Source: Pelomyxa schiedti | Lineage: Eukaryota; Protista; Evosea | Length of the DNA stretch: 64,000 nucleotides | Assembly (NCBI GenBank): GCA_020536535.1 | Contig: JAHLWZ010000359.1 | Location: 35,588 to 99,587, forward strand | Direction of reading: 5' to 3' | Shown: positions 16,068-24,935 of the stretch, one piece after another | How positions within the stretch are numbered: the first letter of the stretch is position 1 | Layout of the letters: every line of letters starts with the position of its first letter | Notes under the pieces: model-generated | Database searches by the model: none | Told to the model about the DNA's origin: nothing | What the model saw: the letters and a program-made list of their open reading frames with translations, nothing else | Program-made: the position numbers and the translations under genes

Positions 16068-17101
16068 ATGGCGGAATGGTTGTGGGTGCTGCAGGTTGTG
16101 AGTGGGTCGTACGTGGGCTTTTTCGGGCTGTATTTTGTGAGTTGGATAGTGGCGCCCAGGCTCATGAGGAGGCAGTACGAACGCGTCGAGGACGAAAAAA
16201 AGCAGGAGTGGCACCAAAACTCTGTGTCATTTGTTCACTCCTTCCTGGTGACTCAGGTTTGGTTCCACAGGAATCCCGATACAATTGACAGAGAAGTGTA
16301 GGGATCGTTGCGTGGCGTGGTGTGGAGATTGATGCAGGTGGAAGTGTGGGATGCATCGCACCTGTCAACCGTTGTGGTGTGCGGCAGTAGTGAGGAGTAC
16401 ATTCACAATTATGCATTTTGTGTGTAGTTCCCTCCATGGCATTGGTTTGGTTCTAAGTGTCTTCCTTTTTTTTTTTTTTGTAAACAGGGCTGTTTGTGTC
16501 ATGTGGATATTTTCTGTACGACATGACTCTATATCATGTATCCACCTGCTCTTACTGATTTGTTTTTTTTTAAAATCTAACATTATCACCAAGACATTTT
16601 CTAAAAACGGGACCTTTTTCAAGCATTTGCACCACATAATTCCTTCGTTGGCCATATTTTGGTTCTACTATATGGATGTCAGTGTTCCGGTTGTTTCTGC
16701 ATTCAACAGTAATGAAGTACCTAGCCTATTGTGCTTGTTATTTTCTCTATCTCACAACTGGCCAGATAAGTACACCCTTCCTGGAACTGATGTGGTTTTT
16801 CCGGTATACCAACCACAGCGCACTTGGAATGGCAGCCACAGTAATGTTTGTGCTCTCATTTGTAGTATCACGTGTTATTGGTGACACAATTCTGCTGTGC
16901 CTTACTCCCTGGGTTGTATGGGACACTGCAATATGCTCTACTGGTGATGACATACACCCACTACCACATAGAACTCATGTGATTGTCACTGTGCACGTAC
17001 TGATGGTAGCCTACTGCCTGCTTCAGTACGTTATGATGGGGCAGGTCACACTCTACATAATAAAGTTCTTCACCAAAAGAAAGGAAACCAAGGAAGCATA
17101 A
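16068..17101 (+). CDS. TLC (TRAM/LAG1/CLN8) domain multipass membrane protein, TMEM56-like; spliced
   Basis: KQEWHQNSVSFVHS, GYFLYD, HLHH, E|ISTPFLELMWF, FVVSRV, plus several hydrophobic helices. Confidence 0.75.
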
Positions 17102-17136
17102 ATACATAAAAACCATTATTATCGTTTTTCATTCAT

Positions 17137-17217
17137 TGGAGGGATGTCACCACCCCACACACAAAAATTGTTTCCAAGCAAAAGACGCGTGGTCATTTGC
17201 GGGAACAGGTAAGTAAT
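17137..17217 (-). ncRNA. Candidate miniature U1-like Sm-class snRNA (~80 nt)
   Basis: 5' AUUACUUACCUG; stem-loop GUUCC-C-GCAAA...UUUGC-UU-GGAAAC enclosing GACCACG (compare U1 loop I GAUCACG); Sm site AAUUUUUG; terminal hairpin GGGGUG-GUGA-CAUCCC (GNRA loop); intergenic between two convergent genes. Confidence 0.6.
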
Positions 17218-17225
17218 TCGAAGAA

Positions 17226-17277
17226 GCGCCGCGACAAGATTGCCCCCGTGCTAGGCACGGGGGATCGCATCAGGCGC
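17226..17277. repeat. GC-rich inverted repeat / hairpin
   Basis: Perfect CCCCCGTGC-TAG-GCACGGGGG core (17243-17263) extended by GCGCC-GCGA...TCGC...GGCGC. Confidence 0.8.
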
Positions 17278-17442
17278 ACTGAATTGATTTAGTTTCTCAT
17301 ATTCACACCGTTTCGTTTTTGTAGGGGGGGAGCTGCTCTGACAATTATGGGCGGCGGCGGTTGGTGGTAGGCGAATTCGGAGCTTTTTTGCTAGAAAGGG
17401 TAGGTAGGGGTTACCCTCCAACTTGGTTTGCGCGACTTACGT

Positions 17443-18633
17443 TTATTGTTTCTCAAAGGTGGGTGGTACTTTATTTTTGGCTTTTCCTCCACAAATTGCT
17501 GCTAGCAACAGTGATTTTGATGCTTTTGGTGGTGAATCGAGGGTGTCAATGGTTTTCGTCTTAAGAGAGCCTGCAACCTTGGGATTTGTAAGTGTGAATC
17601 GAAGACAACAAGAACAGTTACCTTCTTTGGTACTCGTAAGTTTTTCTGCATTTGTTGCCTCAAGCGCTTCATTTTTCTTTTGCAACTCGGCCTTAGTGGC
17701 TTGCAACTCCACGCAAGCTCTCTCAAGACGATTACGCAAGTCTAGAATTTCGTTCTGCAGTGCACTCTTTTCTTCATCTGTGCGAGCGATGAGAAAGGAG
17801 CAACCTTCTCTCCAACACTGAAATGAAAGGACGCACTTAATGCCCGTATAGCGTCCTTCTTGGCGTTCCATCTGGCCACTATGAAATCATATTGTGCATC
17901 AAGTTCTCTATCCAAATCAGAGGGATGTGGAGTTGCCATTTGAACAGAAGAAGCTGGAGCTGGAGCATAAGCCGGGACTGCACTTGCAGTTCCCATTCTG
18001 ATCACCGGGGTATACTTGGAATTAATTCAGATAACCATCACAGAAAATGAAGAAAATGTGAGCAGAAACAAATACCTCGAAAGGGTTGTGAGTCTTCTTT
18101 GGAATCATCGTGATAATTACACCGTCAGTCTTGCAAGCTTGCTCACGAACATATTTCTCCTGCTGGTCCACTTCTTGGTCCCAGTGAACTATAACTGATG
18201 CTCTGAATCCAGCATTCACAAGGAAATCGATATTCCGGCCGCGTGTTGTGCAAACAACTGCTTTTCCATTGATAGTAGCTATGTGCTTAAGAAATTCACC
18301 CCTCTTGTGCAGATGTAAATAGAAACCATCAGCCACACCGACCACTACACACCTTAACTGCCATTGGTACTAGTGTCACTTCAGCGATCCCGCGCCGTTT
18401 AAGTGCCCTCATCACGTACTCACACTCTTCCCATTTTTTGCAGTACACTACCGTCAAACCACTCAACACCAAGGCTATATTTGTTGCCAACCTGGAAAAT
18501 CGCAGGGACCAGTAAGTTCACACACGCAACATCGTTTCTTTACAGCAACAATCAAAGCGTAACAATCCCGCAGCACATACCGCGTAATCTTGTCATCATC
18601 GCTGGTGAACTCGTCCTGCACAATGTGCACCAT
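17443..18633 (-). CDS. Protein with stand-alone degenerate helicase C-terminal (RecA2-like) domain and coiled-coil tail; spliced
   Basis: MVHIVQDEFTSDDDKITR|LATNIALVLSGLTVVYCKKWEECEYVMRALKRRGI...KAVVCTTRGRNIDF...VIVHWDQ...EKYVRE...DGVIITMI; tail LQNEILDLRNRLERACVELQATKAEL. Confidence 0.55.
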
Positions 18634-21572: not shown

Positions 21573-22744
21573 TTTTTGAGACTATATTTTAATGATCATC
21601 ATAAATCTGTTTTCTGCAAAAAAAAATTTTCGTGTTCTTCTCAGTTGAAGTGTCAGTTACTTCGGTGGGTGAGCGCCTCGTGCAACAAGTATTCAGTCTG
21701 GTGGTTTTTGTGCTGAATGAATGCAATCCAAAAAAGCCCGGTGTAGATGGAGGAGCCCTGTGCGCTGGCTGCAGTGTTTCCTTTGGAGTCGACGTACTGG
21801 GTCCCTGTGGTTTCTGCCAACCGGTGGAGTGATTGGAGTCGAGCCATGGCGCTTGGGTGATTGGCTTTTGGGTCAGATGTCCAGCCACTACAGCATATGA
21901 AGAGAATCGGAGAAAAACGTAGTCGATGAGGCTCTGTGTTGGTTGAGTGCCGCGTTGCGCTGCCCTCGTTGCCATTATGGGTCACCTCCCCCGATGTTCG
22001 CGTCCTGCGCGAGTGCGGCGGTATGCGAGCTTCCCATAAGAGAGAGTTCAAAGGACCACTTTCAATCGGAACACCAGTTTTCCCGGATCAGGTGGCAGTG
22101 TGCACAAGACCTTGCGGGGTTCATAGAAAAGGCTATTTGACACACCGACAAAATCTCATTGCAATAGCGACCAAAAACCTTTGTCACCACGTTCCAGTCT
22201 CTCTCATCTCTGGTTGGAGAGCACTTAATTACTCGTAGTGTCAGATAGCTGGCCGACGACTCTGATACATGGCCAGTATCGAGAGAGTGTACACTCAAGC
22301 ACGGTGACATAGTTGAATGGCACCCTCAAGATGAGCTGTCCAAGCTAGGAAGTGAAAGAGCTAGAACGCCAGGGAGAAGCATTGAATCTGTTTCCTCTCA
22401 GGAGGTTCCTCCAAAGTGATTCACCACTGTTTTGACCCAGTTCCAGTCACGAAAACCACAAGAAAAAGAGCCAGAACTACCTTCAGTTCCTCCTTTCGGC
22501 AAGTCCACAACGTAGAAACCGAAGACTTGGCAGAACAGCGGGGAAATTTTGGTTTAGGGCAGTTTTCTTCTTTCCTTTTTCTTCAAAACCACGTCAAGGA
22601 AAAAGGCATTTCCCGGTCGTTTTCCATACCCCGGTTCTTCTCATAGCGACTCCCCCTTTTTAAACGGTCAAAAAACAATCAGTACCACAAGAAAAAAAAA
22701 AAGCGAACCAATCAAGAGCAACAAAGCGAAATAAAATAACACTC

Positions 22745-24935
22745 ATGGCAGCATCCACAGAAATCGAGAATGGTACACAACTTTACGTTTCCACACTGTG
22801 GCCTTACTTTACCAGTTCCCATGTTCTGCTTCCAATGCGAACAAACAGTCAAGGCCGAAGCTTGTACAGTCCGAGGCGTATGCACCAAGTGTGTTTTTTT
22901 TTTTTGGAGTTCGCCACCTCCTTTTTGCTCATTTAAATTTACAGGGATCCTCAATTGGCCGCTCTAGAGGACCATTTGATGTGGGGGCTCCAGTCTCTGT
23001 CTGTGCATGCTCAGGTCGCTCTAGATGCAAATATTGCTCTGCCTGCAAACTTTTACAAGTTCGTAGCCAAGGTTAGCTTTCCATCTCTCCCCGAGTTAAT
23101 GGGGCTTACTCTTGAATAGGGCTTGTTTGCTACTCTGACTAATGTGAACTTCTCGTGCGAAGATATTGCCTCTTTCATTCGCGAGTGTGTTGCTCTTAGG
23201 GACGTAATCAAGGGAGCTAATCCACCTCCAGCACAGCCACTTCCTGGTATTTTCCCCTTTTTTGTGGTTTATTCCTTTCTCTTACATTTCATTAAACCTA
23301 GCTGTTGCTGCTTGGGCACCCGGAACAACAATTCCCGAGTTGGTTACCGAAGCTAGAGCGTACTTGATCCCTAAGCGCTTTGCTAGACTTGGAAAGGGTG
23401 AGATTTCCTCTGTTTAGTATTTTTCTCTCATTTATTGAAGATCGAGTGTGTTTGCAAGAACTTCTTATGTACGGCCTCAAGGGAGTTGCTGCTTACTACT
23501 TCCACGCTCTAGTTCTTTCGATGGCCAATGACGATATTGGCAAGTTCTGTGTTAAAGCTCTTGCTTTCGTGGTATGAGTATTTTTTTGACTCTATAGTAC
23601 CTAACTATGATAGCACAAGGAAGAACCCACAATAGATGAACTCCTGGGGATGTGCCTTGAATGCGGAAAAAGTACTTTTTCCTGTCCAATTTCATCACTG
23701 ATGGAGTATAGTTAACCTTGCGGCTATGGAGCTCCTGGACAAGGCCAACACAACGCACTATGGCAACCCCGAGCCAACTCAGGTTCTCTGGGCTAAGACT
23801 CCTCAGGCTGCCAAAGTCGGGAAGGCAATCCTCGTCTCAGGACATGACTTGCTGGAACTGGAGGAACTCCTCAAGGCTACTGAGGGCAAAGGCATCAACG
23901 TGTGGACTCATGGAGAGATGCTCCCGTGCAATGCATACCCTCTTCTCAAGAAGTTCCCACATCTTGCTGGTCACTATGGAACAGCATGGCAGAATCAGAA
24001 ACGAGAGTTCGAGGCATTCCCTGGTCCTATCTTTATGACCACCAACTGCTATATCCCAGCTCCTCCATCGTAAGTGCAACATCTTGGTATTCCACTTTCT
24101 CACATTAATATAGATACGTTCACCGAGTATTTGCAGCTACACCCGTCGGCGGTGTTGATGTAAAGCAGCGTGAGAACTTCGAGGCGATGATTCAATCCGC
24201 TCTAGAGATGCCAGGATTCCTGGAGCCCACTGAGCCCCTCTCTCACCTTACTATCGGGTTCGCACACAACACTGTTCTTGGTGTTGCCGGAACAGTCATT
24301 GACGCAGTCAAGAGCGGTGCCTTGCGACGTATCTTCCTTATTGGTGGCTGTGATGGATTTGAAAAGGAGCGCAACTATTACACAGAGGTGACTCTCCCCT
24401 CTTTTTGTAGCTTTCTCCGTCTCATTGTATTTCTAGTTTGCCGAGAAAGTTCCAGCTGACTGCTTGATTCTTACCTTGGCCTGTGGCAAATTCAAAATTA
24501 ACATGAGAGATTACGGGACACTCGGTGGACTGCCCAGATTGTTGGATATGGGACAGTGCAATGATGCCTACTCGGCCATCAAGGTGGCTGTGGCACTTGC
24601 AGGCGCATTCAACACTGACGTCAACTCTCTGCCGCTTTCCATGATTCTCTCTTGGTTTTTTCCTCCTCCAATCTCAATATCCCCACACTAATGCCCACCC
24701 AAGGTTTGAACAAAAGGCTGTTGCCATTCTTCTCACCCTGCTATCTTTGGGAATCAAGAACATCTATGTGGGACCTCGCGTGCCAGCATTTTTCACAGTA
24801 AGAGCCTCCCCAATGTATATAACTGTCCTAACCACGCAACAGCCAACAATTCTGGGTGTTTTGGTGGAGAAATTCTCTCTTCACGTAGTTGGGAATCCCG
24901 ACGATGACCTCAGGACCATTCTCGGAACACACTGA
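22745..24935 (+). CDS. hcp: Hybrid cluster protein (prismane; hydroxylamine/NO reductase); multi-exon
   Basis: MFCFQCEQT...[34 protein letters not shown]...[60 protein letters not shown]|[13 protein letters not shown]. Confidence 0.96.

Follow-up and report, generated by a model that had tools for sequence, protein, structure and literature searches.

A candidate snRNA gene between two convergent protein genes

The window analysed here is a stretch of 64,000 nucleotides from a Pelomyxa schiedti contig, in which a plus-strand gene for a TLC-domain protein (stop 17101) converges with a minus-strand gene (stop 17443). On the minus strand between them, at 17137–17217, four U1-type motifs had been read as a miniature U1 snRNA. 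All four are where the original prediction had placed them and fold as it had claimed: ACUUACCUG, the complement of CAG|GUAAGU (17214–17206), GACCACG within a stem-loop (17194–17188), the Sm site AAUUUUUG (17169–17162) and a 3′ hairpin with a GUGA tetraloop (17156–17141). The 5′ boundary, the assignment of GACCACG as a U1-70K loop and the significance of the 81-nt unit, on the other hand, could not be confirmed. Nor is the interval otherwise empty, as had been supposed, for a promoter and a 70-nt hairpin lie in it as well. The features are as follows.

17345–17351, minus strand: DUSE-type promoter element CCCATAA, the element also found before 37 U1, U2 and U4 starts
17314–17322, minus strand: second promoter box ACAAAAACG, its CG ending 31 nt after the DUSE
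17138–17290, minus strand: predicted Sm-class RNA of ~152 nt (predicted start 17290–17288, predicted end ~17140–17138)
17216–17285, minus strand: long imperfect 5′ hairpin of 70 nt, on which the MFE and centroid structures agree
17206–17214, minus strand: internal arm ACUUACCUG, complementary to CAG|GUAAGU
17170–17206, minus strand: stem resembling helix H, which closes immediately ahead of the Sm site and contains the stem-loop with GACCACG (17200–17178)
17162–17169, minus strand: Sm site AAUUUUUG, ~122 nt from the predicted start
17141–17156, minus strand: 3′ terminal hairpin with GUGA tetraloop, from fold prediction
17124–17136, minus strand: A-rich tract, a candidate 3′ box like the tract behind U1 and U4 genes, weaker than most
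16068–17101, plus strand: TLC-domain protein gene (PF03798, E 4.6e-7, profile 194/198), the convergent neighbour, outside the RNA gene
17443–17871, minus strand: 3′ part of the neighbouring protein gene, no Pfam match

Elsewhere in the window, another DUSE with a CG at position 29 overlaps short ORFs (22033–22433, plus strand). An intron-containing gene at 22745–24935 (plus strand) has ORFs that, judged by eye, resemble hybrid-cluster protein (hydroxylamine reductase), a protein typical of anaerobic protists.

Promoter and predicted transcript start

In the P. schiedti assembly searched here (52,367,397 bases, 5337 contigs), the element CCCA(C/T)AA ends 51–57 nt before 37 U1, U2 and U4 starts. 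The published assembly is given as 52.4 Mb in 5337 scaffolds with 149,016 annotated introns (PMC8887013), and in Dictyostelium the DUSE lies ~63 bp upstream of snRNA genes (PMC3188802). For a transcript beginning at 17217, the 5′ boundary first proposed, there is no DUSE at 51–57 nt; the sole nearby one is that at 17351–17345. Known snRNA promoters in this genome carry a second mark, a CG ending 29–33 nt after the DUSE, in 36 of 37 cases as opposed to 28 of 103 background DUSE occurrences. Scored with a weight matrix, the candidate's whole promoter reaches 6.8 bits, near the median of the known promoters' leave-one-out scores, and only three of the 103 background occurrences outscore it, all three preceding structured RNAs beside U4 genes. 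The locus has, in short, an snRNA-type promoter at the correct spacing. Since DUSE and CG spacing together place the start near 17289 (17290–17288), the RNA is predicted to be ~152 nt long, and its arm would begin at position 77, ~75 nt from the start rather than at the cap-proximal nucleotides 3–11.

The same type of promoter precedes further RNAs in this genome. Divergent head-to-head partners of U4 genes (L027, L028, L031, L032) are unassigned RNAs of ~100–130 nt in which a hairpin, a U-rich Sm-like site and a conserved 3′ hairpin follow one another in a SmY-like layout. There are three more families of DUSE-driven structured RNA candidates (L060/L078/L079; L080/L081/L082; L069/L070/L095/L096), and the members scanned (L060, L078–L082, L095 and L096) gave no Rfam match.

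Structure of the predicted RNA

Is the candidate more than a chance assembly of motifs? The 81-nt unit alone is not: ACUUACCUG followed 25–55 nt later by an Sm motif is expected 0.87 times in the whole genome and was observed once, and the 81-mer folds with a z-score of −1.75, matched by 12 of 200 shuffles. Once the promoter and the 70-nt 5′ hairpin are counted in, the locus clearly exceeds chance. For the 154-nt stretch the predicted fold has −57.4 kcal/mol (z −3.96), a value that none of 200 shuffles reached, and the helix-H-like piece (17170–17206) has a z-score of −3.10. Its closing helix pairs 17206–17202 with 17175–17170 and ends right before the Sm site, like helix H of U1. The Sm site is predicted to be single-stranded between helices, with a 3′ hairpin and an A-rich flank behind it, and both its sequence and its distance from the start are close to those of the genome's own U1 (117–125) and U4 (103–121) genes. 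Within the arm, ACUUACC is exposed, with unpaired probabilities of 0.86–0.99; opening the arm would cost 0.89 kcal/mol, compared with 0.61 for U1, and its duplex with a consensus donor is worth −12.4 kcal/mol. A UAGCAC also occurs at the apex of the 5′ hairpin, upstream of the arm, where the predicted fold has it base-paired.

Going by sequence and predicted fold, the locus is probably a real Sm-class snRNA gene, and the 81-nt segment most likely makes up the 3′ half of a longer single-copy gene of ~150 bases. We regard it as a good candidate gene, for which any function is as yet a guess.

Comparison with the U1 genes of P. schiedti

Covariance searches with the Rfam U1 model (RF00003) detect at least 25 U1 genes, 18 of them over the cut-off, which fall into three arm classes (the canonical ACUUAC, n = 10; ACAUAC, n = 13; ACGUAC, n = 2). 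The U1 loci (L010–L024) are mostly head-to-head pairs sharing a promoter, and a subset lacks stem-loop III (~139 nt). A U1-70K gene, whose presence the original prediction had asked about, is encoded in the genome, as is one for U1C. The candidate has several attributes of U1, namely the 5′ splice site complement ACUUACCUG, a helix H before the Sm site, the Sm site itself and a terminal stem-loop. Absent from its fold are stem-loop II with the U1A loop, stem-loop III and the four-way junction, and RF00003 gives no match on the locus even at E 10. The proposed U1-70K loop fares no better: GAUCA-NNN-AGG of stem-loop I, whose eight positions never vary among the 25 Pelomyxa U1 genes, is mismatched at four of the eight in the candidate. 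Among these is U30, a U1-70K contact residue in the crystal structure (PMC4383343).

Genome-wide, U1 genes abound and the ACUUACCUG–Sm pair occurs once, here. An independently minimised U1, as first suggested, is hard to square with at least 25 U1 genes in the genome, a loop off consensus and an arm that would lie ~75 nt inside the transcript, and the reading of the locus as a miniature U1 mostly fails. By the features tested the candidate is not a U1, yet it may act like U1's recognition core. Such a core, engineered from the 5′ arm, helix H and Sm site of U1, binds a 5′ splice site in vitro; without stem-loop I its binding was weakened, so that a fusion of U1-70K to SmD1 was required (PMC4383343). 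That perfect donors are rare in this genome, as had been noted, agrees with our counts: the 10-mer CAGGTAAGTA occurs 74 times genome-wide, equal to its reversed control, in a genome with 149,016 annotated introns.

A probable sister gene with a U2-like arm

A search anchored on the promoter also uncovered a second RNA, L090, which is single copy.

G000:C920:16345–16540, plus strand: L090, DUSE-driven Sm RNA candidate of ~196 nt

L090 has the same layout as the candidate (fold z −4.8). Over the branch-point region its arm agrees with U2 in 21 of 22 positions, and it carries IIa/IIb-like stems; U2 stem-loop I is replaced by a long 5′ hairpin, and the U6-binding 5′ part is missing. When candidate and L090 were aligned globally and compared with structure-preserving shuffles, p was 0.001–0.002 for the whole RNA and 0.008–0.01 for the 5′ hairpin alone, while six other RNAs gave p 0.09–0.8 in the same test. 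The two basal helices of the candidate's 5′ hairpin recur in L090, each differing by a single compensatory pair; the two RNAs also share UACCUGUUC, and in each a GUU..AAC helix immediately precedes the Sm site. As the comparison was made post hoc among ~10 RNAs, homology is likely, not certain, and we consider L090 a probable homologue and sister gene. The candidate is probably an orphan Sm-class RNA gene that has, judging from these alignments, a single sister; promoter- and motif-anchored pattern searches of the genome, which assessed other matches by the first 80 bases of each, yielded no third member of the scaffold.

Further U2-related loci were seen. L125, an RNA candidate (G000:C1024:5573–5720, plus strand), holds the U2 stem-loop I region internally, followed by a hairpin, an Sm-like site and another hairpin; it corresponds to the half of U2 that complements L090's, has atypical promoter spacing (score −3.4) and shares an 11/15 motif with the candidate just before the borrowed piece. 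It can pair (p 0.007) with L043 (G000:C386:144461–144569, minus strand), a divergent U6-like gene with a DUSE (33.6 bits) whose ACAGAGA box is altered and whose AGC triad is retained, the changes preserving the pairing with U4 (p 0.007). L124 (G000:C1091:17275–17441, minus strand) is a U2 copy with a promoter that lacks stem IIb and the Sm site.

Copy number and other RNA identities

Searches for paralogues, by DNA comparison and by a one-sequence covariance model with 3 of 44 pairs mis-set, returned the candidate itself only. A scan of metagenomes for the promoter–arm–Sm pattern gave 31 matches, and none of the 30 examined shares the structure; the other match, L153, came from a human-gut assembly. 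With no homologue outside the P. schiedti genome in that scan, covariation is limited to the two pairs seen against L090. Scanning the candidate with Rfam families, at gathering cut-offs and at E 10, gave nothing relevant, and a tRNA scan of the locus gave none.

Known snRNA identities were gone through in turn. The genes for U2, U4, U5, U6, U11, U12 and U6atac are all located elsewhere. U11 and U12 in particular are excluded by their true genes on C820, C475 and C859 and by the candidate's lack of an Rfam match and of their minor-intron recognition arms, and identification as U7 or SECIS was likewise rejected. Over 10 bp the candidate's loop can pair with the U2 3′ end (−16 kcal/mol), which was taken to be a chance match. 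The minor spliceosome of this organism, for which ~90 minor introns are reported (PMC10639083), is represented by two U12 genes (C475, C859), one U11 gene (C820) and a U6atac gene (L128; G000:C841:53279–53397, plus strand) that has AGCCGAGAGA in place of the usual AAGGAGAGA.

Discussion

What might such an RNA do? We tentatively favour, from sequence and predicted structure, a single-copy, DUSE-driven Sm-class snRNA of ~152 nt whose arm masks GUAAGU-type donors; provided that the gene is real, we lean towards donor pairing as its job. The RNA would be capped and loaded with an Sm ring, as are the spliceosomal snRNAs with which it shares its promoter type. Arm, helix and Sm ring could then adopt the geometry of a U1 core and pair with GUAAGU-type donors, so that the RNA might occupy strong cryptic or regulated donors in competition with canonical U1. 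As the candidate lacks the U1-70K site, the U1A site and a cap-proximal arm, commitment of the spliceosome is unlikely and masking likelier, a role proposed by analogy with the antisense arm of U7-SmOPT. Since perfect donors are so rare (the 10-mer is no commoner than its control), few targets would be expected. This retains the part of the original prediction that spoke of an additional U1-like Sm RNA regulating donors, with a unit of ~152 nt in place of ~80 nt. By the same logic, L090 could read branch points without the U6-binding part of U2. Taken further, the two loci might belong to a modular, recognition-only family of Sm RNAs, decoys or regulators of intron recognition beside both spliceosomes, perhaps acting jointly, which we offer as a rather speculative extension.

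A less likely explanation is that the candidate is a U2-derived Sm RNA of the L090 scaffold whose likeness to U1 is coincidental and which acts without donor pairing, for example in storage or recycling of Sm proteins, or in a cytoplasmic role as reported for the 5′-extended U2 variants of Dictyostelium. UACCUGUUC, common to both RNAs, is in L090 one substitution from UAUCUGUUC of U2, and the sequence 3′ of the candidate's arm follows L090 and U2, not U1. The failed U1-70K loop consensus and the several other unexplained DUSE-driven Sm-like RNAs in the genome point the same way. Against this, the U2 branch-point hexamer is gone and in its place the candidate has an exposed stretch of 10 nt that agrees perfectly with the U1 arm, and the candidate has no direct similarity to U2: its alignment with U2 itself gives p 0.8, and the GUAGUA branch-point arm, stem-loop I and stems IIa/IIb are absent. 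Homology with L090 would explain UACCUG, so that only three letters make the arm U1-like, and these would arise by chance about once in 45–64 if L090 is homologous; it is for this reason that coincidence retains the weight we give it.

The locus might also produce no functional RNA at all, being a decayed or chimeric snRNA pseudogene, a folded 3′ UTR belonging to the minus-strand gene, or simply a plus-strand donor read in antisense. The chance-level motif pair and the single copy fit such an origin, as do truncated U2 fragments in the genome (such as L123 on C792, which has no promoter) and the mere 92 nt between the end of the upstream gene and the DUSE. For the antisense image, the donor CAG|GTAAGT would lie at 17206–17214 with a possible acceptor near 17322; the TLC protein is complete, with its stop 108 nt before that donor, so the intron would sit in the 3′ UTR. 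Introns in 3′ UTRs are uncommon. A single copy is equally true of U11 and U6atac in this genome, and the locus retains in intact form its promoter with the proper spacing, all three helical domains, the Sm site and the 3′ end, which makes a non-gene improbable.

Could a mini-U1 of ~80 nt instead be the mature product, cleaved from the 152-nt precursor at the base of the 5′ hairpin? The arm starts just past that hairpin, and arm, helix, one stem-loop, Sm site and hairpin reproduce the layout of the 75-nt U1 of Trypanosoma brucei (PMC4041458). However, 17217 has no promoter of its own, the cleaved product would be capless, the U1-70K loop fails at half of its invariant positions and canonical U1 is ample in the genome, and we deem processing to a trypanosome-like minimal U1 quite improbable. 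A divergent U4atac, or some other RNA that serves a U6-like partner as a U4-type chaperone, is very improbable indeed: the assembly yielded U11, U12 and U6atac but not U4atac, the order of hairpin, stem-loop, Sm site and hairpin resembles U4 and one duplex with U6 reaches −26.6 kcal/mol (p 0.01), yet that duplex, one of 12 tests, is ridden with mismatches, lies inside the RNA's own strongest hairpin and is absent on co-folding, and there is neither stem I/II pairing with U6atac (p 0.25) nor a kink-turn.

Natural Sm RNAs beyond the standard spliceosomal set are rare, and none that carries its U1 arm internally came up in a limited literature search. If the arm of our candidate works, donor recognition would be separable from the cap and proteins of U1 and reusable for regulation, in a host with very loose donors and three classes of U1. 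The candidate and its probable sister hint at an undescribed class of splicing-regulator RNAs. In practical terms, the DUSE-plus-CG promoter offers a handle on further unannotated RNA genes in Archamoebae.

How does the proposed donor-masking RNA relate to known systems? Nematode SmY, U7, engineered U7-SmOPT antisense RNAs and human variant U1s are non-catalytic Sm RNAs, and the candidate resembles them in using an Sm core as a stable carrier; the antisense arm of U7-SmOPT masks a splice site. It has no sequence or family relation to this group, is natural, has a consensus Sm site unlike that of U7, and bears its arm internally, behind a long hairpin. Closer in phylogeny, Hinas et al. in 2006 reportedly described developmentally regulated U2 variants of Dictyostelium discoideum with an extra 5′ stem-loop, enriched in the cytoplasm. 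The likeness is that of amoebozoan snRNA variants under a DUSE that have gained a 5′ stem-loop, a picture that L090 matches in part. The Dictyostelium variants are said to keep the hallmarks of U2, whereas L090 lacks stem-loop I and the candidate has no U2 hallmark and a U1-type arm, which by description sets both apart.

With U1 the candidate shares the ACUUACCUG arm, whose last G pairs with the base immediately preceding the Sm site, as well as the promoter type, a similar length and an Sm site and terminal hairpin equally far from the start; it differs in its internal arm ~75 nt in and in the missing stem-loops II and III, four-way junction and U1-70K loop. The 75-nt minimal U1 of T. brucei, which lacks stem-loop II, has a reduced layout that the 3′ half of the candidate matches (PMC4041458). 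That RNA serves T. brucei as its U1, carries the arm at its 5′ end and is bound by U1-70K (PMC4041458); the candidate, by contrast, coexists with 25 U1 genes and carries a long 5′ hairpin in front of its arm.
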